From: Oikopleura dioica
Lineage: Eukaryota; Animalia; Chordata
Direction of reading: 5' to 3'
NCBI GenBank assembly: GCA_907165135.1
Contig: OU015568.1
Coordinates: 11,594,001 to 11,658,000, forward strand
Length of the DNA: 64,000 bases
Position numbers and translations under genes: made by a program. Under the pieces are notes generated by a model that made no database searches, was not told the origin of the DNA, and saw nothing but the letters and a program-made list of their open reading frames with translations. Within the stretch, counting starts at the first letter, position 1, and every line of letters begins with the position of its first letter. Shown here in pieces: positions 11,950 to 60,423 of the stretch.

Positions 11950-13306
11950 TAGGGTCGGAAATTTCAGGGCCATGATCACGGTAGGCGCCGATATTTTTTT
12001 GGGTGAACCTATGGGAGGTACTCTTCCAGAAAATGCACATGGCCCTCGCTTAACCCAACATCGACAAGCAAAATTTAACCTGTTTTTGAAAATGGCCTTT
12101 TTACACAAAATTTATGTATTTTTACTATTAATTCCCCTTTTTTAAGCGTAAAAAATCAGAAATTTTTTTCAAAAATATATTTTTAACCCATAATCGGCGG
12201 TAAAAATTAAACCTATTTTTGGAAAAATTGTTATAATTCGCGAAAATCATGTTTTTATTGTTAAAACTTATAATTTATGCGGGCCGTCTCAGCCCCGTTC
12301 CTTGATTTTTGAATTTAAGGGGCTTGACGGCCCTTCGGGCCGTCTCAGCCCCGTTCCTTGATTTTTGAATTTAAGGGCTTGACGGCCCTTCGGGCCGTCT
12401 CAGCCCCGTTCCTTGATTTTTGAATTTAGGGCTTGACGGCCCTTCGGGCCGTCTCAGCCCCGTTCCTTGATTTTTGAATTTAAGGGGCTTGACGGCCCTT
12501 CGGGCCGTCTCAGCCCCGTTCCTTGATTTTTGAATTTAGGGGCTTGACGGCCCTTCGGGCCGTCTCAGCCCCGTTCCTTGATTTTTGAATTTAAGGGGCT
12601 TGACGGCCCTTCGGGCCGTCTCAGCCCCGTTCCTTGATTTTTGAATTTAAGGGGCTTGACGGCCCTTCGGGCCGTCTCAGCCCCGTTCCTTGATTTTTGA
12701 ATTTAAGGGGCTTGACAAAGGCTTGGATTTCTGAGTTGATCAATCTCAGTTTTGTCCCCAGCCCCACCCACATCCATCATTATAAAAATTTAATTTATGC
12801 TAGCTTTTAGCTTTATTATGGTTCTGATTTCAGGATTTATTTTTTCGAGAGTTTCTTTCAATTCTTTGATTTATATTCCCATGAACTCGCGGGGTCAATT
12901 TTATTGAAATTAGAATAAATATTACTGATATTTTTGCCTGTGAAAGGGCGTTTATTTCTTATATTGATTTGTTATGGATAATAATGCATTTTTTATTATA
13001 AATATATCATTTTTTTAAAGAAAAAATTTTTTTTTCGAAAATCCGTTAATTTTCCCCTGTCGAAAATAGGTTAATTATTATTTTTGATTTTATTTATTTG
13101 ATTTTACACGCATAAAATACTTTTAAAAATAATCTTAATAGATAATTTTAATGAAAAAAGCTATTTTCAAAAACAGGTTAAATTTTGCTTGTCGATGTTG
13201 GGTTAAGGGAGGGCCATGTGTATTTTCTGGAAGAGTACATCCCATTGGTTCACCCAAAAAAATATCGGCACCTACCGTGATCATGGCCCGGAAATTTCCG
13301 ACCCTA
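11950..13306. mobile_element. Non-autonomous hAT-like DNA transposon (MITE), 1357 bp
   Basis: Imperfect TIRs of ~150 bp: TAGGGTCGGAAATTTC at 11950 and GAAATTTCCGACCCTA ending at 13306. 8-bp TSD GTTTACAT at 11942-11949 and 13307-13314. No transposase ORF. Confidence 0.9.
12281..12716 (+). repeat. Tandem array, 8 copies of a 54-56 bp unit inside the MITE
   Basis: Unit GGGCCGTCTCAGCCCCGTTCCTTGATTTTTGAATTTAAGGGGCTTGACGGCCCTTC starts at 12281, 12337, 12392, 12446, 12502, 12557, 12613 and 12669. Confidence 0.95.
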
Positions 13307-20094: not shown

Positions 20095-23000
20095 ATGGAC
20101 CTCAACACCCTAGACAATCACCATCCTGGTACTCTTGAAGTACTCCAGGAGCTCAATTTGAGCAACAACCCGCTAGCTGGCTATGCACCCGAGTTCGAAG
20201 AGGAAGACGAAGAAAATGAGAACCAAGTTGTTTATGAAAGCAAGGTCTGCATTCCATCCGGTATTCTTTTATTAATCTACTTAGGTGGACACCAGTCAAA
20301 ACACCCAAAATGCAGAGGATATGTTCATGCTCCAGAAAACTGAAGACTCAGAAGGCAATTCCGCTCCTTCCGCTTCAGATGAGCTTTCAGTTGAGAATTC
20401 TACCGGAAGCGACTCCCAGAGCATCCAATACGACCAGAAACCAATCCTATCCCTAGAACCTCAGCAAGCTTCAGTTCCTTCTGTTCCCTCAGTTGCATCC
20501 TCTATCCCATCAGCGAACGGGAATTTCGTCGTTTACGACGATGAAAACAACGTCTTTGATGTCAAAACACATACAGAGCAAATCGATGATGTCCAGAGTT
20601 ACGAACTTGCTCCAGTTGATGATAGGAAAGCGTCAAAAATATTCATATAAAAATTTATCTTCAGATGACCTTAGCTTCTTGTTTTTGACGTCAAAAAAAG
20701 ACAAGTGATTTCTATTCCCGATAATATGGAAATTCAAAAGACAGCAGAGGAACTCAATGACAGTAAATTCCATGTCTTTCAGCTCCAGGATGTCATCGAA
20801 AACGTCCACCGCACCGAAAACTTCAGAGAACAAATGATCGGCTCTCTGAAGCTTAATATGGCGAGCCAACAGAGAATAAAAGATGTCATCAAGAGACTTG
20901 GCATTCGACTATCGGCGGTCAAAGAGCGTCACATGGTCGTCTTTGGGATGATTAACGGTGTTTCGGACAGAAATCGGGGGAGGAAGAGCATGAATTTGCC
21001 GATGTTCAGCAATGGCTACTTTTGTCAGTCGGATACCGGTTGGCGCGTCCCACCGGGCGTAAGCGATAACGACTTGGAGAAACAGAAGATATGTGAGCCC
21101 TTCGAGTCGGTCAACCAAGATCCTCCAAGAAAATGGTCGCCGGAAGAAGACAGAGCCTTGAAGAAGGGTGTTATCGAGGCAGCTTCAAGACCCGTCCTGA
21201 GAACAGTAAGGCAGTCAATGAAAAAGGCTCAGAAAGAATCGATGGACTCGAAGCTCAAAAAACTCAACACAGATCTCCACAAGCTCAGCAAACAATCCGA
21301 AAGAGATCTGATCGGTGGAAGACATCAGGAATACGATTGGGAAGTCACTTCGATTACCCATCTAAAGAGTCTGAGAACTCCTGACGAGTGTCGATTAAGA
21401 TGGTCAAACGCGGCACATTTAGATATCAAGCGATCGCACTGGTCAAGCGATGAGAAAAAGAACCTGCGAAAGTGGGTTAAGAAATTCGGCGAAACTGGAT
21501 GTTGGAGGAAAATCTCCGAAAAGATGGTCAGCAGAACTGCCATTCAGTGTTGCGTCCAGTGGACTAAAATGCAGCAGGACGAAGAAAAGGGAAGACCGTG
21601 GACGAAAGAAGAAGATAGAATTCTGCTCAAAGCAGTTGAAGAAAGTCAACTTCATGAAGACGGTCATTTGGGAGTTAGCTGGAACACGGTAGCTGCTCAA
21701 ATCAACGGAAGAACACCGCAGGTATAATTACACTGACGATAACTAAACTAACAATATTTCTAGCAATGTACACACCGCTGGAAGAAGTCTGTCGATCCAA
21801 AGATCAAGCGAGGCGGCTGGGACATTAGGGAGGACGTGAAACTCCTCCGCGCTGTTCAAGAAATGGGAGAAGAGTGGGCGCGGATCCGAGACTCAAAAGT
21901 GCTCGAAGATGCGGATGGGAGCTTCAGAACTGACATGCAGATGCGTGATCGTTATCACAACGCTCTGAGCCATGGGCATATTCGAGGACCTTGGACGCAA
22001 GAGGAAGATAAACTTCTTGAAGAAGGCCATAAAATTTATGGAAATCAGGTATTTCGAGATGTTGTTTCTCTTTTTTATTCATTTTTAGTGGACGATGGTT
22101 GCTTTGCATGTACAAACGCGTAACGATGGTCAGTGCCTGAAACGATGGCATCTAAGAGAAGATCATATTGCGAGGAAAAAGCCCATCCCGTACATAAAAT
22201 CGACAAAAGCATGTAAAGTTGAGAAGATTCGCACGCTCAAGAAAGCGATCGCACTGGAAGCTCACGAAAAAGCCTGCCACAAGCAAGTCGCTCGTGATCC
22301 AAATCTTGTCATCTTGAACAGGGACATTTATCATAAAGATCCTGCTAGTAAGTTATCACACTTTTTCTCTCGTAATTATTATTTTTAGCACTTGTGGAGC
22401 AGAACAAAGATGCGATGTTCAACATGTATCCAGACCTTTATGGAAGAGAAAAGAACCCTCTACCTGCGCTTCTGGCACCTGAGAATACTGACAATTCGTG
22501 CACAGCGCTGGTACCCAAGAAGCTGGATGACAAGGGCTACCAGCCAGATACATTCAAACGCTTCCAGGATGTCATCTCTCGAATGCGTAACAAGGGCAAA
22601 GCGGCAGAAAACGGGCTTTTCTTCAAACACATCATCGGAAATCTCAAATTCAAGAACTGGAAAGGACAGCATTTTGGGAAACTTTTACGAACTGCTGACA
22701 AATGCAAGGACCCAAACGTCTGGATTCCCCCCTCTGCTGTACCGATGAAACTCACTGAGATGCTCTTTGATTCGGTGGAGAGAAAGAAGATTGAAACAAG
22801 AGCGCAATTTTTAAGTAACCGACCTAGTGTCGAGAGAAGGAAAGGATAACAGAAATTTCAAGATTGTTTTAAAGTAAAAAACTTTTATTATCCACTGAAG
22901 ACGACGAAATCAACTAAAGGCAATTCTAAAAATGACACTTTCGGCCTCTGTTGCCTTGCGAACAGCGGCTCCAGAAGTAACGATGATGGAAGGTGATCCT

Positions 23001-23608: not shown

Positions 23609-26600
23609 ATGTTGGCGAAGGCAGGAACTTTATCCTTTTTGGCCTCGGTCAGCGCAGTAAACGTCGATGTATCTTCTTGCGTTGGATATACTGTCGAAGT
23701 AGATAATAACTACCGTTTCATTCATGAAGACGACTCATCAGTCACTATCCAGATTTTGAATGTGTTCAGCACTGATCCTCAGGTGAATTTCATCCACGTT
23801 AATTTTATATTTATTGACTAAGGACCCATCTTATCTCGGAGCAGATGGTGTTCTTCGCCTCACATTTCCATCCCTTCCAGCTATCGATTCTTATTCCTTT
23901 GGATACCCTATTGATAGCGTCACAGAGGACGGAAACTCTCTCAATTTCGAGCTAGCGGATGCTGCCGTAGGAAGCTTCATCCTCGCGTCTAGCTTTACTG
24001 CAAACTACGTTCTTCCTCGACCCCAGGAGCAACTAGTTCCATCAACAATGGAATACTGCCAGAGTACCGTGGAACCAACAGATCCACCACTGACCATCGA
24101 TTCTTGTATTCAGGAGAAAATGGACGCAAAATGTGCCCAAACAAATAAAGCTGCTTGTCCCAACTTTGAATACGCTAGGTTTAATATCGAGACCGGAAAA
24201 TATCGATGCTATGAAAGTGTTTCGAACGATTTCATCGTCAGCTCTTGCTTCGACTCTGAGAATAACCGAGTTGATTGCGCTTCTTATGGACCGGACACTC
24301 CATTTTGCAACCTTCCTAATCTCGCTGATATTCGAACAGAGGGTTGTGATGCTCCCCCAGAAGAGTGCTGTGTTGACCACACCGATGATATCACCATCTC
24401 CAACACTTGGGCATCCCAGTCTTGCAATAATCAGTGTATGACTTTGACCAGTACAAACACAGATTCATCTGCTGGAAAGAAAATCACTGTTCAGTTTGAT
24501 GATCTGGTCGAATTTCCATCCGTTCTTCCTTATCCAATCGACTTCGTTTCAAATCTAGGTGGTAACAAGTTTGAGATCAACTTCCTCGCCGACCAAGACA
24601 ATCCGATGTCATTCAACATCAATTTGGATGGACTTGCTTCTCAAGTAATTGAAGTCTTCGTTTGCGGTGAATGCGTTGAGACAACAACATCAACAACTGT
24701 TGCGTCGACAACAACGACTACTGAAGCTGGTCAGACAACTACTACAGGTGCGCCAAGTCCAGTTGGATGCTTCCCAGTTCCTGGGTTCAGTTACACGCAG
24801 GTCGAAAAGTGGCTCGAGGGAGAACAGTTCAAAATCTCAGCTGAGTTTGATGATGATGTTCATGCCAACTCTGGAATTCGAGATGAGAGCTACTTGAAAG
24901 TGACTTTTGACAATATTCCCGACGGAACAGATCTTCAAGCATACTGGCCATTCGAAACTGGTACCATCAGTGGAAATTCCATCGACTTTTCTGTGGTCGA
25001 TTATGTTTCAGGAACAAATGTCGCCAACCTTGAGTTTCAGCTTCGATTTTCCAGCCAAATTTCTGAATCTTTGACTCTGAACTCATTGGAAATTTGCCAC
25101 GAGAGCAGTCCAACTGAAGGGCCACCGATTACATCTCCCCTTACTGATAGTTCTTTCTGTGAGGATGCAACGCTTTCTATGAAACAAGCGTGGACTGCTC
25201 GCGGTTTCATGGATCTCTATCTTAATCACAATGTCCAAGAGACCTATGTCACTGGTGATTACATTGAAGTTGGTTTTGATGGACCTATTGGAGTCCAACA
25301 GGTCTACTATCCATGGTCTCAAGACCAGTTTGAGGATATGGGAAACAATATCTATCGATTTTTCATTGTTAACGGAGTAACCAACTGGACGGGATCAAAA
25401 GTCGATCATGTTTTCGGACAATTTAGTTTTGTTGGATCGGCAGAGCATTACCCTGACGTTCTCTGGACGCAGATCTGCGACAAAAATGGAGTTGATGGTA
25501 GCACAACGACAACTGTTGAACCCACGGGCCCACCCACTGGATGCCAAGAAGTAACAGTTACGCTCGAATCATCCTGGAGATCTTCTACTGGCGAATTCAA
25601 TATCGAGCCTTTTGTCGCTGATCCACCTATCACAAAAGATGGCTATCTTGATATTCAGTTCTCTGGCCCACTAACATTCACTTCGGTTTATGATCCCTTC
25701 AATGCAAATAATATGGAGGATCTCGGAAACAACAAATATCGCTTCTTCATGGATAGTAACGAATGGTTCCAAGGATGGTCAGGCGCCTTTGCAGGCATGG
25801 ATCCCATGGGCCAAGCGACTTTCTCAGGCGCGGCTGGTAATTTCCCTACTGCTGTCAGCGCTTCTATCTGTACTGGTACTGATCCAACAACTACTACACC
25901 TACTACAACAACCACAACTCCGACGACAACAACTACTACCACTACTACCACAACCACCTCAACTACTACTAAAACAACAACTACGACTCCAACAACCACG
26001 ACAACGACTCCAACAACCACGACAACCACGCCAACAACTACGACGACCACACCAACAACGACTTCAACGACAGATGAATCAACAACGCCATCTCCAGATC
26101 TTGTCTGCCAAGACGTTCTTGTTGCCGCCCAAAACTTCTGGACAGATGCAGGCATCGGCCAGGCGCAGTTTTACATCCAGTCTCGGGTTTTGGAACATGC
26201 TATTCCTAGTGATGGCTATCTTGAAATTGAGTTCAGCAAGGCAGTAACCGTTGAGGATTTGTCTCATCCTTTCGAAGAATCCGATCCAGCTGGACTTTAC
26301 AGCTACCTATCCGACTCCAAAATCAGAGCTCACTTCGACTCTACTGATTTCCCCGGCTGGACTGGTGAAGTTCCAGATACTTACTTTGGACTGATGAGCT
26401 TCGCTGGTGAAGCAACCCCAGAAAATCTTCCCTCCGTTCTTTCCGCAAAACTTTGTTTTGGTGATGATTCTTCTACTTCAACAACTGTTGGCTCAACGAC
26501 TACGAATGAACCACCAACGAATCCCCCAGGAATGACAGATGCTTCTCTCTGCGATTCCCTCGAGGTCTGGGTAGATTCATCTTGGGTCCAACGTGGATGG

Positions 26601-26915
26601 ATGAACATTCGCATGTCTAGCGATGCTCTCACAAGAAACTACGAACCGAACGACTATATCGAGATCCTTTTCTCTAAAGGCGTAACATTTGAGAGGGTAT
26701 GGAATCCACTGAAGGAAAGCCTCAATAAAGTTGAAGATCTTGGGGACTTCGCTCATCGATTGTTTTTCTGGTGGCAATTTCATGGATACACTGCACCTTC
26801 CTTTGAACCGGTATCTATTGCTCAACTGAGCTACACAGGTAACGCAGCGAATTACCCGGAAATTATTGCTGCTCAAATCTGCCCTAAATCCGCACTCCCT
26901 CCAGGTATTTTATAA
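23609..26915 (+). CDS. Large secreted modular protein (~1088 aa) with repeated Cys-bounded ~110-aa domains and Thr/Pro-rich linkers; candidate extracellular matrix or house protein
   Basis: Signal peptide MLAKAGTLSFLASVSA; single 40-nt intron at 23783-23822; four clear repeats (25158-25478, 25542-25871, 26106-26456, 26550-26882) and three more divergent N-terminal ones. Confidence 0.85.
25885..26085 (+). repeat. Coding ACN-rich repeat, poly-Thr/PTTTTTT mucin-type linker
   Basis: Direct translation gives PTTTTPTTTTTTPTTTT.... Confidence 0.9.
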
Positions 26916-42373: not shown

Positions 42374-44963
42374 TTAGTTTTGAGGATCTTCAGAAGAGGG
42401 GAGCATTACCGCCACTTCAGGAGCAACGCGATTTTGAAAGACTGGCCTCCGCTCGCTGACAGGGGAAGGTGGAATCGTAAGGACATTTTGAGTGTCGCTC
42501 GGGGCTTCTTTTAGAGAACTTAGTGCGCCAAGGATCTTGTCCAGTTTATCATCTGCAAAAAAATTAATTGAGAAAAGCGCTCTATTACTTACCGATGTCG
42601 GAAACCTTCTTTTCGAGAGTTATCAGCCTCCCATTCATTGAACTTCTTGAAATGTAACCAGCAGAAGATCCGTTTTTTCGATCAAGTTCAACTGTTGACG
42701 CCACGCCGAGGATGTTTTCCATTCTAGCGACCCAAATTAGATTTCGTTGCTGCGATGATTCTAACCTGTTTTGCAAGAGTTTCACGCGAGCGAGCATGTC
42801 AACATGGCCAGCAGAGTATTGTTCGATGACGTCTTTGACATCATAAGGCCGCAGTGCTTCCTTGAATTTCCTCTTCGCAACGCAGAATTTCATCATTCGA
42901 ATGAATCGTAATGCAATCTTTTGCTTCTCGGTCAGCTGATTGTCTGCCGCTAAATATTCGTCGTCGTCGATTTCTGTGATGCCATTTTGGTTTACGTCTA
43001 AAACATTGAAGTCGGTGATTTTATCTCGACAAGTTACCTGATTTCAATCCGGGTGAGTTGAGTTGATGATGTTTCGTAGCAGAAACGCGGCGAACAGGAA
43101 ACAAGTCTTCACTCGCGAGCTGTGGAGAAAATGAAAACAGATTCTTGATGTTATTTTTGGTCTCATCTTTCGACTTCTCGATCGATTTCTTGCAGCTAAA
43201 GTCGATCAAAACATGTTCAAAAACGGGTTTCACTTACAGAGCAGTTCTAGCTTGATTCCAAGTAGCTATTGAGCTTGACTCTTCATCGGCTGCGTAGTTT
43301 CTCCAAACCGCCTGTATCAACAACGCAGCTGGGTTTCGTCGTCTCGCAAAGTGCTTCTGGCGATGCTGCTCCTGAACTTTCAAGGCGAATCCAGTACCGA
43401 GGATTCCCGCTGGCAACGCAAAGAATGCCATTCCAACAACGGCGAAAAACGACGCAATCGCTTGACCAGTTGTTGTTGCTGGAACTTTGTCTCCATAACC
43501 AATCGTCGTTAGGGTTATAAAACCCCACCAGAGGGAGTCCCCAAATGTCAAAAAATGGCAAGTCGGAGCACTTCCATCCTCAAAGATTGTTCTATTGGCG
43601 GCCATTTTGCATTCATCGGTCGTAAACTCAACTTGCCAGATGATGTAGCTGACGAAGATCAAGACAAGAAAAGCAATATAGATTGCCGTCAAAAGTTCCT
43701 TGAGTAAGGCTGTGAAAGAAAAATTATTTTCGTTTGTTCGTAAAAACATGGCGATCTATGTAAATTTTTCAACGGATTTTGACAAGATCAGTGCGTCAAT
43801 TTTGTAATATTCTCGCAATGGCTGTCCTGAGCATTTATCGTCTAATTTCATTCGCGATCAAAAGTACGTCAAAAATAATTTGCGAGAAAATAAATAAAAA
43901 AAAATCCACAACCCTTTCCTTGGAGTGAGCATAGACAACGGATCCCAGTAGTTTCCATGTTCCGCCTCTTCTATCGACTCTCACCATTCGTATAATCTGG
44001 AGGAAACGCAGTGCTCTGAGAGCGGAAGCGGCGAAGAGACCCTTCTCGATCGTTAGGTTTCCAAAGATCAGAATCCAGGAAGCAATAACAACCATCAAGT
44101 CGATGATGCAAAAAGGCCGTCGCGCGAAGTGAAGGCGCCCGAGTAGACCTTGATACCTGGGAGTCTCGGTTATGGAAATGAAGAGAAAAAACGTGACAAG
44201 ATACATGGAAACATCTGGTTTCCCCAATGCTCACCTTGATCTACAGCCAGCCGACCAGAGACGAAGGATGTATTCGAATGTGAATTGCACCATTATGATC
44301 TTTTCCAGAATGTTCAGCACGTATTCCGAAGTCGAGGAGATTCGGTCTTCGTTGTCGTCGTATACATCTCCAGTGATGAACATTGTGAGGATGAGACATG
44401 CAAAAACAAGGAGAAACCTTAATCTTTTGTTTACAAGAACTAAGCCCAAAGTGTGTTGTTTACGTATAAATGTGATAATAAGTACTGATGTGGTGCCTGT
44501 TAAGCACCGGGCGTTCGAGGATATTATAGAGATTTGGCTGGAGGTAGTGATAAAAGAAGGAATATCTGGTGCCCGAATAATTGGAGTTGGAGCCGAAAGA
44601 GCGCATCCGAGATCTTCCCTTCCCGCTTCCCCGTTGCAAGCGTTTGAGTTTTTGCTCATGATACTGAGTATCTCTTATTCCGCCGACTGTTCCGTCTCGG
44701 TTCAGGACATTTCTATCAAGCCCCGGAAGGCTGGCTCTCTGACCGTAGCTTCCAGAACCGTATCTTAGCTTTGGCTCGGCATTACGCCTGAAAATAGGAG
44801 CCCCACTATGCGTGGTACTGTGCGATTGCCAGAACGGGTTAGAAATCTCATCCACGGTATCGCTCGAACCAGTGACTGAGCATGTCAGTCCAGAATCGTC
44901 GGTCACTTGTAAAGCAGGCGTTACAGCGAATCTTTCGTTGGTTGAAGAACTCAAATTTTCCAT
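42374..44963 (-). CDS. KCNQ: KCNQ (Kv7) voltage-gated potassium channel
   Basis: [13 protein letters not shown]; S4 [37 protein letters not shown]; pore [18 protein letters not shown]; [25 protein letters not shown]; [21 protein letters not shown]. Confidence 0.97.
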
Positions 44964-46889
44964 TTTGACAAGATGGCTTGATTATTTTTTCCAAGCTTTT
45001 ATATGGCTACCTTAGTGGTGGCATCAAAGGGGCTGATATTGCGGAAGAAGAAGGGTGCAGCTTTCGCCTGCTGCACCTGCTTTTATATTAGGGCGCGAAC
45101 GGCCCAATAAAATGCTAGTTTTGACAATTTTAGGAGCCTTATCGGCGTCAGTCCGTGAACTTCTTGAGCATTCCCGACAATATTAGCGCAGGAAAAATCT
45201 AAAACCCCATTTTAGAATGAACCAAGATAACCAAACTTTAAGAGTTATGGCATTTTCTTGTCAGTACTTGTCAGCCATTAAATCACCCTAACGAGTGAAA
45301 ATGAATATTCAACCCAACTCTGTATCGCTGTTTGTATTCTAGCGCCTGTTGCGCGTGCCGTGTGTCTTCCATAACTCAGTTTCACAAAAAATATAGCGAA
45401 AAAAAGCGAAAAGGGATGAAAAGAGGCACCTCTCTTTGCGGATTGTGGCTCATTAACGCAGCAGCTGGGGAAGTTGGGGAAGTGAGCTTGCAACGAGCAG
45501 GCCTCGACTCACCTCGTCACACCCTTCACTCAACTCCCTGACACTTACATACACGGTATTCAGAATCTGACACACATTTAGGTAAAATGGTTTGAGTACT
45601 CACACTGTCATATGATAACATGCAGCAATCTTTGAAGTCTTGAAATTCGGCCGCTCAAGAATATCTGTATCAGGTTTTAACTACCCCTTTAGATCGACAG
45701 AATCAATGATCGAGAGACTTTGAAACCCTTTTCAAAGATGAAATTCATCGCTTGGAAGTAGCAAGTGCTCCTAGAATGCCGAATCTGGAAGCTCTTGATC
45801 TGCTTTCCATGAAGTGATTTTCGCATAAGCGCTTCTCTGATGTAAGAGTCTTTGCTGCTCATTTTGCAGATTTAAAGTTAAAAATATGAGATTTACGAAA
45901 TGCTTTTTTAGTGTGGTAGTTAATTGAGTTGAAAGAAATCCGAAAGCGATAAATTCGAGTAACATTTTACGATTAATTTCAAGCTGTCAGCTAAAACTTT
46001 AAAGAGGGTTTGATTTAATACGTTTTGTAAAATAGACCGCACAGTGGACCCTTTTAATAAAGCCGTACATTGTCTCTTATACTTTTTTGGGAAAAAATTC
46101 TCAACAAAATAAATAATATTGATGATTTTTTAGCGAACTAATTTAGCGGTACTTTTGACAACGCTAAGAAAGACGAGCAATAAAGGATAAAATTGACCCA
46201 ATCCGAACAGGACGTTTCCCATAGATCCATTCCGACGCAGAATCGCGAATACTCTTTTTACGGCGATATTATTGTAAACACGTTTATGATGATAAATGGA
46301 CATTGGCGTGTTTTTGCCTGTTAGCAATTTATTCGCTGGGAAACGAAAGTGTCGTTTTATCGCCTTCCCCGCGTCACTCGTCTTTTGAGAAATCGTTTTT
46401 TGTCCAGGAAAATCCGCCTTCGAAATCGAGCATGTGTAGGCTTCCCGCGGCTGTTTTCATTTTCCAGGTTCTTTTGCAGAGACACACCAAACTTACAGAA
46501 TATATGCACCATGACACGCCTTACAAAACTGCACTAGCCGATTTTTCGAAACGGCTCATTTTTGTGCCTTTTTTGGCGATTTTTGATGAGAAAAATGTAT
46601 ATAGATGAATTGTTCCAAAATTTAAGGGTGTTCCCACATACCGATTATTATCATTTTTGGATATGTTGTAGAAGAGGGTTCGCTGATTCTTTGGACCACT
46701 GGACGAATTCTGCAGACCTCGATTTCGGTACTTTCTAGAGCTTCAAAGTCGACAAAGTCTGCCAGATATGAAATTTCAAAATTTGCAACTTTTGATCTAC
46801 GCATTCTACGGTGACGATTTATAGCTCATCTTGGAGCTTATGAACCACTGAATTCAGTAAGGTGTTTTTTCTGAACCAGCTGGTCATTC

Positions 46890-47600
46890 TGGCGGTTCGT
46901 CGCGGTTCAAGCATTTAAAAGAGCCGGGATCCGGAAATATGTATATCAAAATGCATATTTTTTGACGACGAGTCGTTTCAACACATTTTCGAACCGAACC
47001 ACTTGGCTAACCGCCCGGTTCACAGCGGTTCAAAGCGGTTCAAGGTCTGAATGTTCACAAAATATTGAAATATGTATATCAAAATGCTTGTCTAGTCAAA
47101 AGGAGTCTTTTGGACAGATTTTCGAACCGAACCACTTGGCTAACCGCCCGGTTCACAGCGGTTCAAAACGGTTCAAGGTCTGAATATTCACAAAATATTA
47201 AAATATGTATATCAAAATGCTTGTCTAATCAAAAGGAGTCTTTTGAACAGATTTTTGAACTAAACCGGACAGCTAACCGCCCGGTTCACAGCGGTTCAAA
47301 GCGGTTCAAGAACTGAATGTTCACAAAATATTGAAATATATATATCAAAATGCTTGTCTAGTCAAAAGGAATTAATTCAACAGGTTTTCATACCAAACCG
47401 CTCGGTTGACCGCCCGATTCACAGCGGTTCGAGGCGGTTCAAGCTCTTTTAAATTGCAAAATGCTGAAATATGTACATCAAAATGCTTCTCTACTTATGA
47501 AAAATCATTAAAACAGGTTTTCGAACCAGACCGCTTGGTTGACCGCCCGGTTCACAGCGGTTCAGGGCAGTTCTAGCTCATAATACTCACAAATTGCTGA
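46890..47600 (+). repeat. Subterminal array of 133-bp units (5 plus 1 degenerate), left arm
   Basis: CCCG(G/A)TTCACAGCGGTTC recurs at 47014, 47147, 47280, 47413 and 47546, an exact 133-bp period. Confidence 0.9.
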
Positions 47601-47655
47601 AAAAAATAAATCAAAATGCTTCTTTACTCATAAGAAATTGTACGTTTGTACAATG

Positions 47656-49385
47656 AAGTCTGAGACGGGGCCAAGCCGACCCGAAGGGGAGGCCAGGACC
47701 ATTTGAACAATTGAGTCTGAGACAGGGCCAAGCCGACCCGAAGGGGAGGCCAGGCCATGTTATACAATCAAGTCTGAGACGGGGCAAAGCCGACCCGAAG
47801 GGGAGGCCAGGCCCGTTTGAACAATTTAGTCTGAGACAGGGCAAAGCCGACCTGAAGGGGAGGCCAGGCCCGATTGTACAATCCAGTCTGAGACAGGGCC
47901 AAGCCGACCCGAGGAAGAGACGAGGCAAGTTTGAACAATTAAGTCTGAGACGGGGCAAAGCCGACCCGAAGGAGAGGCCAGGCCTGTTTGAACAATTGAG
48001 TCTGAGACAGGGCCAAGCCGACCCGAAGGGGAGGCCAGGCCCATTTGAACAATTGAGTCTGAGACAGGGCCAAGCCGACCCGAAGGGGAGGCCAGGCCCG
48101 GTTGTACAATCAAGTCTGAGACGGGGCAAAGCCGACCCGAAGGGGAGGCAAGGCCCGTTTGAACAATTTAGTCTGAGACAGGGCCAAGCCGACCCGAAGG
48201 AGAGGCCAGGCCCGTTTGAACAATTGAGTCTGAGACAGGGCCAAGCCGACCCGAAGGCGAGGCCAGGCCCGAATGTACAATGAAGTCTGAGACGGGGCCA
48301 AGCCGACCCGAAGGGGAGGCCAGGCCCATTTGAACAATTGAGTCTGAGACAGGGCCAAGCCGACCCGAAGGGGAGGCCAGGCCCGGTTGTACAATCAAGT
48401 CTGAGACGGGGCAAAGCCGACCCGAAGGGGAGGCCAGGCCCGTTTGAACAATTTAGTCTGAGACAGGGCAAAGCCGACCTGAAGGGGAGGCCAGACCCGA
48501 TTGTACAATCCAGTCTGAGACAGGGCCAAGCCGACCCGAGGAAGAGACGAGGCCCGTTTGAACAATTAAGTCTGAGACGGGGCCAAGCCGACCCGAAGGG
48601 GAGGCCAGGCCCGGTTGTACAATTCAGTCTGAGACGGGGCCCACCCGACCCGAAGGGGAGGTCAGGCCCGATTGTACAATCCAGTCTGAGACAGGCCCAA
48701 GCCGACCCGAAGAGGAGGCCAGGCCTGTTTGTGCATTTTAGTCTGAGACGGGGCTAAGCCGACCCGAAGGGGAAGCCAGGCCCGTTTGAACAATTTAGTC
48801 TGAGACAGGGCCAAGCCGACCCGAAGGGGAGGCCAGGCCCGATTGTACAATCCAAACTGAGACGGGGCCAAGCCGACCCGAAAGGGAGGCCAGGCCCGTT
48901 TTTACAATTTATTCTGAGACGGGGCCAAGCCGACCCGAAGGATGGGCCAGGCCCGTATGTACATTTTAGTCTGAGACGGGGCCAAGCCGACCCGAAGGGG
49001 AGGCCACGCCCGATTGTACAATCCAGTCTGAGACAGGCCCAAGCCGACCCGAAGAGGAGGCCAGGCCCGTTTTACAATTTAATCTGAGACGGGGCCAAGC
49101 CGACCCGAAGGATGGGCCAGGCCCGTATGTACATTTTACTCTAAGACGGGGCCAAGCCGACCCGAAGGGAGGCCAGGCCCGTTTGTACATTTAAGTCTGA
49201 GACGGGGCCAAGCCGACCCGAAGGGGAGGCCAGGCCCGTTTTTACAATTTAATCTGAGACGGGGCCAAGCCGACCCGAAGGATGGGCCAGGCCCGTATGT
49301 ACATTTTAGTCTGAGACAGGGCCAAGCCGACCCGAAAGGGAGGCCAGTCCCGTTTATCAATTCAGTCAGAGTAAGGACCAAGGCG
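47656..49385 (+). repeat. 57-bp satellite, left arm (~30 units)
   Basis: Unit AGTCTGAGACGGGGCCAAGCCGACCCGAAGGGGAGGCCAGGCCCGTTTGAACAATTT, e.g. at 47828 and 47885. Confidence 0.95.
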
Positions 49386-49514
49386 ACCCGAAAATGATGT
49401 TTTCCTTGCACCGTTATCGATAATTATCTCTGTAAATCGGGAACAAATTCAAATTTTCTAACATTATCTCCTTAAAAACAACAATTCAACAAAGAACTAA
49501 GACAAAAATAGGAA

Positions 49515-52500
49515 AAGCCTCCCCTTCGGATCCTCTTAGCCCCGACTCAGACTTAATTGTACAAACGGGCTTAGCCTCCCCTTCGGGTCGGCTTTGCCCC
49601 GACTAAGACTGAATTGTACACTCGGGCCTGGCCTCCCTTCGGGTCGGCTTGGCCCCGTCTCAGACTAAATAAACGAACGAGCCTGGCCTCCCCTTTGGGT
49701 CGGCTTGGCCCCGTCTCAGACTGAATTGTACAACCGGGCCTGGTCTCCCTTCGGGTCGGCTTGGCCCCGTCTCAGACTTAATGTACAAACGAGCCTGGCC
49801 TCCCTTCGGGTCAGCTTGGCCCCGTCTCAGACTGAATTGTTCAAACGGGCCTGGCCTCCCTTCGGGTCGGCTTGGCCCTGTCCGAGACTGGATTGTTCAA
49901 TCGGGCTTGGCCTCCCTTCGGGTCGGCTTGGCCCTGTCTCAGACTAAATTGTTCAAACGGGCCTGGCCTCCCCTTCGGGTCGGCTTGGCCCTGTCCCAGA
50001 CTGGATTGTTCAATCGGGCTTGGCCTCCCTTCAGGTCGGCTTTGCCCTGTCTCAGACTTAATTGTTCAAACGGGCCTGGCCTCCCTTCGGGTCGGCTTGG
50101 CCCCGTCTCAGACTTAGATGCACAGACGGGCCTGGCCTCCCCTTCGGGTCGGCTTGGCCCCGTCTCAGACTTTATTGTACAATCGGGCCTGGCCTCCCTT
50201 CAGGTCGGCTTTGCCCTGTCTCAGACTAAATTGTTCAAACGGGCCTGGCCTCCCCTTCGGGTCGGCTTGGCTCCGTCTCAGACTTAAATGCACAAACGGG
50301 CCTGGCCTCACCTTCGGGTCGGCTTAGCCCCGTCTCAGACTAAAATGCACAAACAGGCCTGGCCTGCTCTTCGGGACGGCTTGGCCCTGTCTCAGACTAA
50401 ATTGTTCAAACGGGCCTGTCCTCCCCTTCGGATCGGGTGGGCCCCGTCTCAGACTGAATTGTACAACCGGGCCTGGCCTACCCTTCGGGTCGGCTTGGCC
50501 CTGTCTCAGACTAAATTGTTCAAACGGGCCTGTCCTCCCCTTCGGATCGGGTGGGCCCCGTCTCAGACTGAATTGTACAACCGGGCCTGGCCTCCCCTTC
50601 GGGTCGGCTTGGCCCCGTCTCAGACTAAATTGTTCAAACGGGCCTCGTCTCTTCCTCGGGTCGGCTTGGCCCTGTCTCAGACTGGATTGTACAATCGGGC
50701 CTGGCCTCCCCTTCGGGTCGGCTTTGCCCCGTCTCAGACTTGATTGTACAACCGGGCCTCAGACTAAAATGCACAAACAGGCCTGGCCTCCTCTTCGGGT
50801 CGGCTAGGGCCTGTCTCAGACTGGATTGTACAATCGGGCCTGGCCTCCCCTTCAGGTCGGCTTTGCCCTGTCTCAGACTTAATTGTTCAAACGGGCCTGG
50901 CCTCCCCTTCGGGTCGGCTTGGCCCCGTCTCAGACTTGATTGTACAATCGGGCCTGGCCTCCCCTTCAGGTCGGCTTTGCCCTGTCTCAGACTAAATTGT
51001 TCAAACGGGCCTGGCCTCCCCTTCGGGTCGGCTTGGCTCCGTCTCAGACTTAAATGCACAAACGGGCCTGGCCTCACCTTCGGGTCGGCTTAGCCCCGTC
51101 TCAGACTAAAATGCACAAACAGGCCTGGCCTCCTCTTCGGGTCGGCTAGGGCCTGTCTCAGACTGGATTGTACAATCGGGCCTGGCCTCCCCTTCGGGTC
51201 GGCTTGGCCCTGTCTCAGACTAAATTGTTCAAACGGGCCTGTCCTCCCCTTCGGGTCGGGTGGGCCCCGTCTCAGACTTAATTGTTCAAACGGGCCTCGT
51301 CTTTTCCTCGGGTCGGCTTGGCCCCGTCTCAGACTGAATTGTACAACCGGGCCTGGCCTCCCCTTCGGGTCGGCTTGGCCCCGTCTCAGACTAAATTGTT
51401 CAAACGGGCCTCGCCTCTTCCTCGGGTCGGCTTGGCCCTGTCTCAGACTGGATTGTTCAATCGGGCCTGGCCTCCCCTTCAGGTCGGCTTTGTCCTGTCT
51501 CAGACTTAATTGTTCAAGGGCCTGGCCTCCCCTTCGGGTCGGCTTGGCCCCGTCTCAGACTTGATTGTACAATCGGGCCTGGCCTCCCCTTCAGGTCGGC
51601 TTTGCCCTGTCTCAGACTAAATTGTTCAAACGGGCCTGGCCTCCCCTTCGGGTCGGCTTGGCTCCGTCTCAGACTTAAATGCACAAACGGGCCTGGCCTC
51701 ACCTTCGGGTCGGCTTAGCCCCGTCTCAGACTAAAATGCACAAACAGGCCTGGCCTCCTCTTCGGGTCGGCTAGGGCCTGTCTCAGACTGGATTGTACAA
51801 TCGGGCCTGGCCTCCCCTTCGGGTCGGCTTGGCCCTGTCTCAGACTAAATTGTTCAAACGGGCCTGTCCTCCCCTTCGGGTCGGGTGGGCCCCGTCTCAG
51901 ACTGAATTGTACAACCGGGCCTGGCCTCCCCTTCGGGTCGGCTTGGCCCCGTCTCAGACTCAATTGTTCAAACGGGCCTCGTCTTTTCCTCGGGTCGGCT
52001 TGGCCCCGTCTCAGACTGAATTGTACAACCGGGCCTGGCCTCCCCTTCGGGTCGGCTTGGCCCCGTCTCAGACTAAATTGTTCAAACGGGCCTCGTCTCT
52101 TCCTCGGGTCGGCTTGGCCCTGTCTCAGACTGGATTGTACAATCGGGCCTGGCCTCCCCTTCAGGTCGGCTTTGCCCTGTCTCAGACTAAATTGTTCAAA
52201 CGGGCCTGGCCTCCCCTTCGGGTCGGCTTTGCCCCGTCTCAGACTTGATTGTACAACCGGGCCTGGCCTCCCCTTCGGGTCGGCTTGGCCCTGTCTCAGA
52301 CTCAATTGTTCAAATGGGCCTGGCCTCCCCTTCGGGTCGGCTTGGCCCCGTCTCAGACTTGATTGTACAATCGGGCCTGGCCTCCCCTTCAGGTCGGCTT
52401 TGCCCTGTCTCAGACTAAATTGTTCAAACGGGCCTGGCCTCCCCTTCGGGTCGGCTTGGCTCCGTCTCAGACTTAAATGCACAAACGGGCCTGGCCTCAC

Positions 52501-53045
52501 CTTCGGGTCGGCTTAGCCCCGTCTCAGACTAAAATGCACAAACAGGCCTGGCCTCCTCTTCGGGTCGGCTAGGGCCTGTCTCAGACTGGATTGTACAATC
52601 GGGCCTGGCCTCCCCTTCGGGTCGGCTTGGCCCTGTCTCAGACTAAATTGTTCAAACGGGCCTGTCCTCCCCTTCGGGTCGGGTGGGCCCCGTCTCAGAC
52701 TGAATTGTACAACCGGGCCTGGCCTCCCCTTCGGGTCGGCTTGGCCCCGTCTCAGACTTAATTGTTCAAACTTGCCTCGTCTCTTCCTCGGGTCGGCTTG
52801 GCCCTGTCTCAGACTGGATTGTACAATCGGGCCTGGCCTCCCCTTCAGGTCGGCTTTGCCCTGTCTCAGACTAAATTGTTCAAACGGGCCTGGCCTCCCC
52901 TTCGGGTCGGCTTTGCCCCGTCTCAGACTTGATTGTACAACATGGCCTGGCCTCCCCTTCGGGTCGGCTTGGCCCTGTCTCAGACTCAATTGTTCAAATG
53001 GGCCTGGCCTCCCCTTCGGGTCGGCTTGGCCCCGTCTCAGACTAA
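49515..53045 (-). repeat. 57-bp satellite, right arm (~62 units), inverted relative to the left arm
   Basis: Plus-strand unit GGGCCTGGCCTCCCCTTCGGGTCGGCTTGGCCCCGTCTCAGACTAAATTGTTCAAAC. Confidence 0.95.
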
Positions 53046-53099
53046 ATTGTACAAACGTACAATTTCTTATGAGTAAAGAAGCATTTTGATTTATTTTTT

Positions 53100-53810
53100 T
53101 CAGCAATTTGTGAGTATTATGAGCTAGAACTGCCCTGAACCGCTGTGAACCGGGCGGTCAACCAAGCGGTCTGGTTCGAAAACCTGTTTTAATGATTTTT
53201 CATAAGTAGAGAAGCATTTTGATGTACATATTTCAGCATTTTGCAATTTAAAAGAGCTTGAACCGCCTCGAACCGCTGTGAATCGGGCGGTCAACCGAGC
53301 GGTTTGGTATGAAAACCTGTTGAATTAATTCCTTTTGACTAGACAAGCATTTTGATATATATATTTCAATATTTTGTGAACATTCAGTTCTTGAACCGCT
53401 TTGAACCGCTGTGAACTGGGCGGTTAGCTGTCCGGTTTAGTTCAAAAATCTGTTCAAAAGACTCCTTTTGATTAGACAAGCATTTTGATATACATATTTT
53501 AATATTTTGTGAATATTCAGACCTTGAACCGTTTTGAACCGCTGTGAACCGGGCGGTTAGCCAAGTGGTTCGGTTCGAAAATCTGTCCAAAAGACTCCTT
53601 TTGACTAGACAAGCATTTTGATATACATATTTCAATATTTTGTGAACATTCAGACCTTGAACCGCTTTGAACCGCTGTGAACCGGGCGGTTAGCCAAGTG
53701 GTTCGGTTCGAAAATGTGTTGAAACGACTCGTCGTCAAAAAATATGCATTTTGATATACATATTTCCGGATCCCGGCTCTTTTAAATGCTTGAACCGCGA
53801 CGAACCGCCA
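53100..53810 (-). repeat. Subterminal array of 133-bp units, right arm (mirror of 46890-47600)
   Basis: Reverse-complement copies; the ORF track gives identical spurious peptides at 46962/47065 (+) and 53517/53384 (-). Confidence 0.9.
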
Positions 53811-54399
53811 GAATGACCAGCTGGTTCAGAAAAAACACCTTACTGAATTCAGTGGTTCATAAGCTCCAAGATGAGCTATAAATCGTCACCGTAGAATGCG
53901 TAGATCAAAAGTTGCAAATTTTGAAATTTCATATCTGGCAGACTTTGTCGACTTTGAAGCTCTAGAAAGTACCGAAATCGAGGTCTGCAGAATTCGTCCA
54001 GTGGTCCAAAGAATCAGCGAACCCTCTTCTACAACATATCCAAAAATGATAAGAATCGGTATGTGGGAACACCCTTAAATTTTGGAACAATTCATCTATA
54101 TACATTTTTTCTCATCAAAAATCGCCAAAAAATGCACAAAAATGAGCCGTTTCGAAAAATCGGCTAGTGCAGTTTTGTAAGGCGTGTCATGGTGCATATA
54201 TTCTGTAAGTTTGGTGTGTCTCTGCAAAAGAACCTGGAAAATAGTTTTCAGCCGCGGTAAGCCTAAGCATGTGCGGCCTGGTTTAGAGCAGGGTTGAAAT
54301 AAAAATCAATAAAAATGTTCTGTTAGAATATCGAGAACGCTTTCAAGTAAAGATATAGGTAGGTCTGTTGACCTTTTAAGAGTCGTCGACAGGAAAACA

Positions 54400-59235: not shown

Positions 59236-60423
59236 TTAGCAGGTAAGGAATGATTTCGGAATCAGCTCCGTGAAGATTTTGTACTCTAACTTCGACTGGA
59301 GTTCCCTAAATAGACCATACACTACCAGATAACACAGTAAAAACTTACGTCACACCACCTTCGGGAAGGTTAAAAGCTTCAAATGGAAGATCACCATAAC
59401 CGCCAGCAATAAAAACTGTGTTCCCAACAACAGCGGATGCGTGATTATGCCTAGCTAAAAATGAAAAATTGATTTGAGAAAAGTATCGACCTTTTGTTCG
59501 CCAGAAATCCTGCAGCTCCCCAAGAATGAGTTTCAGGAAAGTACTTGTTGATTTTCGTTATGTAATCTTGCTGCAAAGCCGAATATCCGCCAAACGTGTA
59601 GATGTGATTTTCAAAGACGACTGTAGTGAAACCATTGATGAAGTCAGTCAAGTGAGCACCGAAATCTTCCCACTCTCCCGCTGGCGAAGAGAGGCTTTCT
59701 ACTTGATTGGTGTATCCAGCGATTCGTAAGAGAGTATCATTATAATTAACAAGCCCTCCGAAACGATGATCCAATGTTGATTCGGGCCCCTCATCGAACT
59801 TATCTAAAATCACTAAAAAATCATTATTTCCATCTGCCACTGACGTAAATCATAATGGTAGCACTTTTTAGGATCGTCCGCGTTTCCACACATCCAAATG
59901 TCATTCTCCCACACAGTGCACCGATGCTGATACATTTCGATTGGTAGTCTCGCGACAGTTTTGAACTGACAGCCATTCGCTTTTGATACACGGTACTCGT
60001 CGTAAAATCCACCGATCACATAGAAATCCCCTTCATATTCAACTGTACACACCATGTCAATTTCATGGTCGCGGAAGTCAAACGAAGCATTTTCTTGAAT
60101 GGTATCAAGTTTAAAGTTCACATCCCAGGCATCTGTCTTCAAATAAGCATTACAACACGTACACTATTAATAACACATACTCCGACTACAAGTGCAAACT
60201 CAGAAGCAGCGCATTCAATGTCACAGGAAGCATTTTCTCTAAGACAGGTTCTGGGGACCTTCATTTCATGAAACCTAGCACAATACCTAGCACAGATTGA
60301 TGGGCAGCTTGCATCTTCCGGTGGACAGGCAGAAATACAGCTCTCTAGTTCAGCAAGACAAAAAGAATCGCAACTATTCTGAGCTTTAGCAGCTCCTATT
60401 ATTCCTAAGTAAAACCCCCTCAT
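59236..60423 (-). CDS. Secreted protein with Cys-rich N-terminus and kelch-like beta-propeller
   Basis: MRGFYLGIIGAAKAQNSCDSFC...; kelch-type motifs FYVIGG, IYTFGG, HNHASAVVGNTVFIAGG. Confidence 0.75.

Follow-up and report, generated by a model that had tools for sequence, protein, structure and literature searches.

A 7.8-kb foldback element in Oikopleura dioica, probably a young non-autonomous derivative of a hAT-type transposon

The 64,000-nt stretch of Oikopleura dioica contig OU015568.1 analysed here (the window, whose numbering is used for coordinates unless another sequence is named) contains a foldback element of 7,829 bp at 46437-54265. We propose, with a probability of roughly 0.78, that it is young and non-autonomous, a foldback derived from a cut-and-paste transposon of the hAT type, and that a transposase supplied in trans moved it as a 7.8-kb unit. 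The assignment to hAT probably holds, and is based on the ends of the element, its target-site duplication (TSD), and transposase relics in related copies.

Structure of the foldback element

The element begins TAGG and closes CCTA; identical copies of the 8-mer AGCATGTG flank it at 46429-46436 and 54266-54273, forming an exact TSD with AT at positions 4-5. The left end opens TAGGCTTCCCGCGG, whilst the right end, read inward, opens TAGGCTTACCGCGG, with nt 8-23 of the left end being unlike the right. Each arm is built of three tiers, i.e. a terminus of about 497 bp, 5.2 copies of a 133-bp unit, and an array of a 57-bp satellite. On the left (plus strand), the terminal segment of the long terminal inverted repeat (TIR) occupies 46437-46933, the 133-bp array 46934-47621, and the satellite, with 30.8 units, 47643-49392. 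An AT-rich, non-coding core of 124 bp (49393-49516) leads into the inverted right arm (minus strand), in which about 62 satellite units (49517-53057) are followed by the 133-bp array (53079-53766), with a single mismatch relative to its left counterpart, and by the terminal segment (53767-54265). The 133-bp array carries repeated GGTTCA motifs, which are candidate transposase-binding subterminal repeats.

The ends, TSD, three-tier arms, and AT-rich core (put at ~130 bp) had been described in an earlier reading made from the sequence alone (the sequence-only reading), and are borne out here. Its estimate that about 98% of the element is inverted repeat also agrees with our analysis, in which everything outside the core, 98.4% of the element, shows relatedness to the other arm. 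It had further claimed that the element lacks coding capacity; we likewise reject such a capacity, as the open reading frames (ORFs) within the element are only read-through of repeats.

The description of the element as a near-perfect palindrome, however, does not survive. Although the outer 1,208 aligned columns of the two arms (about 1.2 kb) are 99% identical, with 10 differences, the left arm is 2,956 bp long and the right 4,749 bp, and the two satellite arrays (30.8 versus about 62 units) are in mirror register for their first 5 units only, with 7 of 57 distinct unit sequences being common to both arms. The right array grew through block duplications of 6-7 units, one such block being present three times, and includes a truncated unit of 25 bp near 50750. 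The innermost satellite units are degenerate, with 3-8 differences from the best unit of the opposite arm. The element is a lopsided foldback, and not a near-perfect palindrome.

The 57-bp unit folds as an imperfect hairpin (z -2.9) with a TTCG loop, which in the left array is on the opposite strand; no Rfam match to a structured RNA was found in window positions 40000-64000. The sequence-only reading had suggested that the palindrome would extrude cruciforms, give long hairpin RNA where transcribed, and promote rearrangement. On general grounds, cruciform extrusion from duplex DNA is unlikely because of the 124-bp spacer and the degenerate innermost units, whilst fold-back of the element in single-stranded DNA or RNA is plausible. 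By every feature tested the element is a foldback, having long modular TIRs with tandem repeats, a variable non-coding middle, a TSD, and dispersed mobile copies.

Insertion polymorphism and target site

We compared the window at the insertion site with contigs assembled from four public DNA runs (X1-X4) of two studies. In all four runs the contigs depart from the window at 46436 and resume with the sequence after 54273, giving an empty allele which has one copy of the 8-mer and no element. Since the site is empty in all four, the element is a recent insertion polymorphism, which was inserted precisely with duplication of 8 bp. Insertion as a single unit had been claimed from the sequence, with empty-site alleles in other individuals proposed as a check; the exact TSD together with the precise empty site in each run supports both. 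In two runs, moreover, a closely related terminus is linked to different flanks (for X1 with a weak consensus of 0.58 agreement), and therefore copies sit elsewhere in other animals. Because copies are polymorphic among animals, the cut-and-paste system is probably still active in this extremely rearranged genome.

AT is present at TSD positions 4-5 in 8 of 8 complete TSDs from the family (against a background of 0.077; p about 1e-9) and likewise in 12 of the 13 other independent flanks, giving a total of 20 of 21 sites; the one exception is a metagenome match without other similarity to the family. This central AT differs from the nnnTAnnn consensus of Buster elements (PMC3517528). It also differs from the pattern of the Hermes/Ac type, which favours T as the second and A as the seventh TSD base (PMC8721813), a pair found together in none of the eight complete TSDs. 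For hAT enzymes, a central AT that hardly varies would constitute a new target rule; our literature search, which covered few subscription journals, returned no paper with an nnnATnnn target, an absence of little weight.

The family in the Okinawa assembly

The genome scanned for related copies was the O. dioica Okinawa assembly OKI2018_I69 (64,281,565 bases in 19 contigs), which is Nanopore-based (PMC8008620). The terminal 14-mer has 34 exact matches, and a looser end pattern yields 18 facing pairs of 581-7,829 bp, about 79 kb in total, of which nine are known by coordinates only. The window element is the longest of these, and exact 8-bp TSDs flank all eight intact pairs that were read. Copies range from 0.6 to 7.8 kb, with cores from none to about 760 bp, and fall into at least four subfamilies, between which the ends (TAGGCTT) are only about 70% alike. 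Sister copies have an identical plan, likewise with unequal arrays. A search with the termini had been suggested as a means of finding sister and autonomous copies; it did reveal other copies with their own 8-bp TSDs, but an intact autonomous copy was not found in the assembly. The family is small (18 paired copies), giving it modest genome-wide weight, and the paper on scrambling of this genome goes no further than to suggest transposons as a possible origin of microhomology (PMC11067885).

Some copies lie in composite surroundings. At L031:222-5839, the L031 copy is nested in another inverted-end element with the candidate TSD TTGGTAAC. At L050:535-9288, on contig C4 and about 30 kb short of its end, a family end bearing three satellite units adjoins an array of a 72-bp repeat, which contains TTAGGG and is present in 110 identical copies, followed by an assembly gap. 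Half elements at L044:1498-6156 and L049:9143-9899 (near the starts of C5 and C4) adjoin a 163/170-bp satellite array, and L049 is also interrupted by a gypsy-type retrotransposon.

Homogenised arms and asymmetric ends

Comparison of 14 arms, from seven copies of the commonest subfamily, reveals 18 variable columns that are shared by both arms of one copy and six fixed left/right differences, all of which lie in columns 21-34. A one-base length difference between the ends, at nt 16-23, is kept in each subfamily with paired copies. For the window element, six of the 10 arm differences fall within the first 35 of 1,208 nt (p 1e-7). The arms within a copy thus appear to be homogenised, with left/right differences persisting at about nt 16-34. 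The simplest reading is that the arms are copied onto one another whilst an asymmetry of the ends is protected; alternatively, conversion tracts may simply fade near the ends. Hermes treats its two ends unequally (bioRxiv 2022.09.16.508221), and near-identical arms with differences only at nt 16-34 provide a natural case on which the end-asymmetry model put forward for it can be tested.

Odd palindromes of the TSD are present at one end of two in-place copies (L031:5319-5333 and L033:2720-2740), as would be expected if one end had been cleaved via a flank hairpin and then rejoined. Cleavage with a flank hairpin is common to hAT and Mutator (MULE) enzymes (PMC5499845).

Transposase relics and superfamily assignment

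Transposase sequences were searched for exon by exon. In decayed relatives of the window element, predicted transposase exons either separate the 133-bp array from the 57-bp satellite or lie beside the array. At L044 a TAGGCTTATCGC end is followed by the 133-bp array, 1.7 kb of exon-like pieces ending YFTLCLD, and the 57-bp satellite; amongst 1.8 billion representatives the L044 exon matches P0001 (86%), P0002 (49%), and P0004 (47%). P0002 is encoded on a marine metagenome contig, L051, in the order satellite, an exon carrying CLDG, MSDT, and CxxH, further pieces in which GSRF and NxxxESAF occur, and a 133-type array. L049 has a TAGGCTTGCCGC end and an array, and then 3′ exons which are 51-76% identical to the L051 pieces. 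Both predicted halves of the transposase gene are tied to TAGGCTT ends in these relatives, with the 5′ and 3′ exons oriented as in a resident gene in independent lineages (L044, L049, L051, L053-57).

All family-annotated proteins amongst the Atlas neighbours shown for P0002 are hAT types (ZBED1, Hermes, DUF659, DUF4371; TM 0.62-0.70). The best solved structure for the P0002 model is Hermes (Z 9.0, root-mean-square deviation 3.2, 115 residues; TMq 0.41), compared with Z 6.7 and TMq 0.32 for ISCth4. The earlier guess that the ends are hAT-like gains support from these exons in relatives, with their predicted Hermes-like fold.

Other searches covered a range of sources. A protein-guided scan of JGI metagenomes and a PDB sequence search found nothing, a terminus scan gave four short matches, all without transposase, and an Atlas search with the 3′ exon gave no usable match. 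A word-based homologue search, which is length-limited and silent on full-length kin, returned P0004 only, and a BED finger was not recognised in the L044 ORFs scanned. A Tara metagenome contig (L058:1-802) contains a transposase region matching P0002 at 65%, without satellite and with two in-frame stops upstream. On a 2.9-Mb contig, an 8.5-kb insertion (C3:2185001-2193463) splits a family terminus, such that the matches to query positions 1-229 and 224-410 are now 8.5 kb apart; a 474-aa transposase-like frame at C3:2188703 was rejected as partner of the family, as it lies within this insertion and is 26% identical to P0002.

Several observations weigh against the reading proposed here. The structure model of P0002 is weak, with a predicted local distance difference test (pLDDT) score of 57.6; unrelated RNase H/actin-like folds tie with Hermes at Z 8.3-8.6, and in Foldseek the best E-value goes to the IS256/MULE-type ISCth4, which has, however, the lower TM-score. 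Neither P0002 nor the 3′ exons have a Pfam match; likewise, the L049 and L051 exons, which are short and were searched separately, are not matched by the hAT dimerisation model PF05699. No intact transposase was found in the Okinawa assembly, where the L044 fragment matches best and the remaining matches have 25-34% identity. The coding relatives belong to sister subfamilies, with ends only about 70% identical to those of the window element. The filled allele was not seen in runs X1-X4, the contigs of which drop rare variants. With respect to arm copying, the private mutations shared between arms come mostly from a single copy, L037, and the arms could have been evened out when the inverted repeat was polished.

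We hold the hAT assignment at about 80% because the structure model is weak and the Foldseek E-value favours a MULE-type enzyme. A foldback of MULE origin, with the relics being those of a divergent MULE transposase, is nonetheless unlikely. The DD-CxxH-E motif is common to the hAT and MULE superfamilies, and so fits both. Most foldbacks are of the Mutator type, with exceptions such as Galileo (PMC4079207), and MULEs are characterised by TSDs of 8-9 bp, TIRs filled with repeats, and chemistry via a flank hairpin (PMC5499845). Here, however, the TSDs are strictly 8 bp and the ends are TAG..CTA, no MULE cluster is present amongst the Atlas neighbours shown, and Hermes scores above ISCth4 in both Z and TMq.

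An interior shared with an apparent second hAT family

Four composites (L039, L040, L041, and L046) have TAGGGTCGG ends and TA-centred TSDs, with an interior of 133-bp arrays and 57-bp satellite. TA, and not AT, is at the TSD centre in 5 of 5 TAGGGTCGG copies read. The 130-bp core of L046 is homologous to the window core (score 117 versus 38 +/- 8.5, maximum 65, in 500 shuffles), and the main match of the composites to the TAGGCTT terminus begins only at nt 296-365. In appearance they are the shells of a second hAT family, filled with the interior of the TAGGCTT family.

The window itself contains a 1,357-bp element with TAGGGTCGG ends at 11950-13306, which has the TSD GTTTACAT and imperfect TIRs of a few hundred bp. 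Inside it, at 12280-12716, a hairpin unit of 56 bp is repeated 7.9 times; this unit and the 57-bp satellite are distantly related (score 52 versus a shuffle maximum of 43).

Near-identical PF05699-positive hAT copies at C1:635096-641973 and C1:730810-737685 (coordinates only), with their matches 1.8 kb inside TAGGGTCGGACCC ends, are candidate drivers of the TA-centred family; they were rejected as the autonomous partner of the TAGGCTT family on account of their different ends. These copies are relevant to the possibility that the transposase exons are passengers and that an unrelated enzyme moves the family, for example a Pfam-positive hAT with TAGGGTCGG ends. The only multi-copy matches to the hAT dimerisation domain in the genome include these two, and the same arrays, satellite, and core are held by TAGGGTCGG-ended elements. 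This possibility is rather improbable, as the TA-centred TSDs of the TAGGGTCGG elements imply that they were made by a different enzyme, and the 5′ and 3′ exons retain the orientation of a resident gene across the lineages given above.

Least probable is that the internal layout, with its length and lopsided arrays, arose in part because Nanopore reads of a shorter real element had folded back. The assembly is of the Nanopore type, the satellite copy numbers are those of the assembly, and no sister copy found is as long. A fold-back chimera, however, would repeat the flanks in mirror image and make the two arms identical. Here the flanks are unique and, in the empty allele, rejoin exactly; unit content and order are different between the arrays, and the sisters share the plan with unequal arrays. 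An assembly chimera of the whole element is rejected on the basis of the empty site in 4 of 4 runs, the differing arrays, and the TSDs that the sisters have of their own.

Proposed origin and comparison with known systems

In the mechanism that we favour for a hAT-derived foldback, the parent would have had a spliced transposase gene flanked on each side by a 133-bp array and, outermost, an end. The 57-bp satellite would have come to sit inside the gene, with the coding part being lost. The arms may be copied onto each other by template switching or gene conversion, in gap repair or fold-back, whilst the satellite would grow and shrink in each arm separately via slippage or unequal exchange. 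The transposase is envisaged to cut through a hairpin on the flanking DNA, to tell left from right by a code within the first 35 bp, as Hermes does with its unequal ends, and to impose the nnnATnnn target.

A more specific proposal, which we offer tentatively and at less than even odds, is that the family represents an undescribed hAT lineage that strictly selects nnnATnnn and has active foldbacks of up to 7.8 kb. Their arms would be kept by copying, the one-base-offset left/right code (nt 16-34) would be preserved since one end of each kind is needed, and the satellite cassette would have passed between hAT families. The family points to a hAT origin for a foldback, where foldbacks are usually Mutator or P derivatives, and the preserved intermediates, with ends, arrays, part of the gene, and satellite, show how a foldback may form.

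Likenesses to hAT elements comprise the 8-bp TSD, the TAG..CTA ends, the unequal left and right ends and, in the relatives L044, L049, and L051 only, a predicted DDE transposase with CxxH and a Hermes-like fold. The hairpin-type flank scars would fit hAT cleavage, but MULE cleavage as well. hAT ends begin (C/T)AG (PMC6004678), in agreement with TAGG..CCTA. Typical hATs have TIRs of 5-27 bp and are under 4 kb (PMC3517528), unlike the window element with its kb-long arms and 7.8-kb length; this norm describes typical hATs, and any foldback derivative exceeds it. hATm elements have TAGGGTG ends (PMC6004678), in contrast to the TAGGCTT of the Oikopleura family, which fits none of the Buster, Hermes-type, and hATm signatures.

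The architecture is of an already known type, that of foldbacks with satellite arms (FB, Tetris, Galileo). Tetris, a Drosophila virilis foldback, is alike in being non-autonomous, with modular TIRs composed of an outer domain and a variable tandem-repeat domain, a non-coding middle, and 8-10-bp TSDs, and in being a source of satellite arrays (PMC4079207). It differs in that its TIRs reach 1,735 bp with 220-bp repeats, compared with arms of 3.0 and 4.7 kb and two repeat tiers here. Tetris was tentatively assigned to Mutator, with no transposase found (PMC4079207), whereas the Oikopleura family has a strict 8-bp central-AT TSD and hAT-like transposase relics. Galileo is a P-superfamily element, and its TIR repeats are demonstrated transposase-binding sites (PMC4079207), a role that the repeats here may share; the FB/TU foldbacks are likewise of a different superfamily (as cited in PMC4079207). 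The Xenopus miniature elements Xmix/Xstir and miDNA4 are alike in that a tandem repeat was born or amplified in a non-autonomous TIR element and spread by it (PMC9659126). They are, however, small and of other superfamilies (PMC9659126), whilst in Oikopleura there are two opposed multi-kb arrays, with the unit shared by elements with unrelated ends. The sequence-only reading had called the design unusual; a whole family in this genome, however, has this architecture, for which Tetris, Galileo, and FB are close precedents. No Oikopleura foldback was found in our literature search, which lacked Repbase and subscription papers of the Naville 2019 type, such that this absence is weak.

Neighbouring genes

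A gene for a KCNQ voltage-gated potassium channel (Pfam Ion_trans and KCNQ_channel) is present on the minus strand at 42585-44963; the insertion is upstream of the first ORF of this gene, at a distance of about 1.5 kb. Elsewhere in the window, ORFs with Myb DNA-binding repeats are located at 20705-21727, a 1,033-aa ORF with a low-complexity, CAA-rich stretch and without a Pfam match at 23814-26915, and a Kelch-repeat ORF at 59451-59840.

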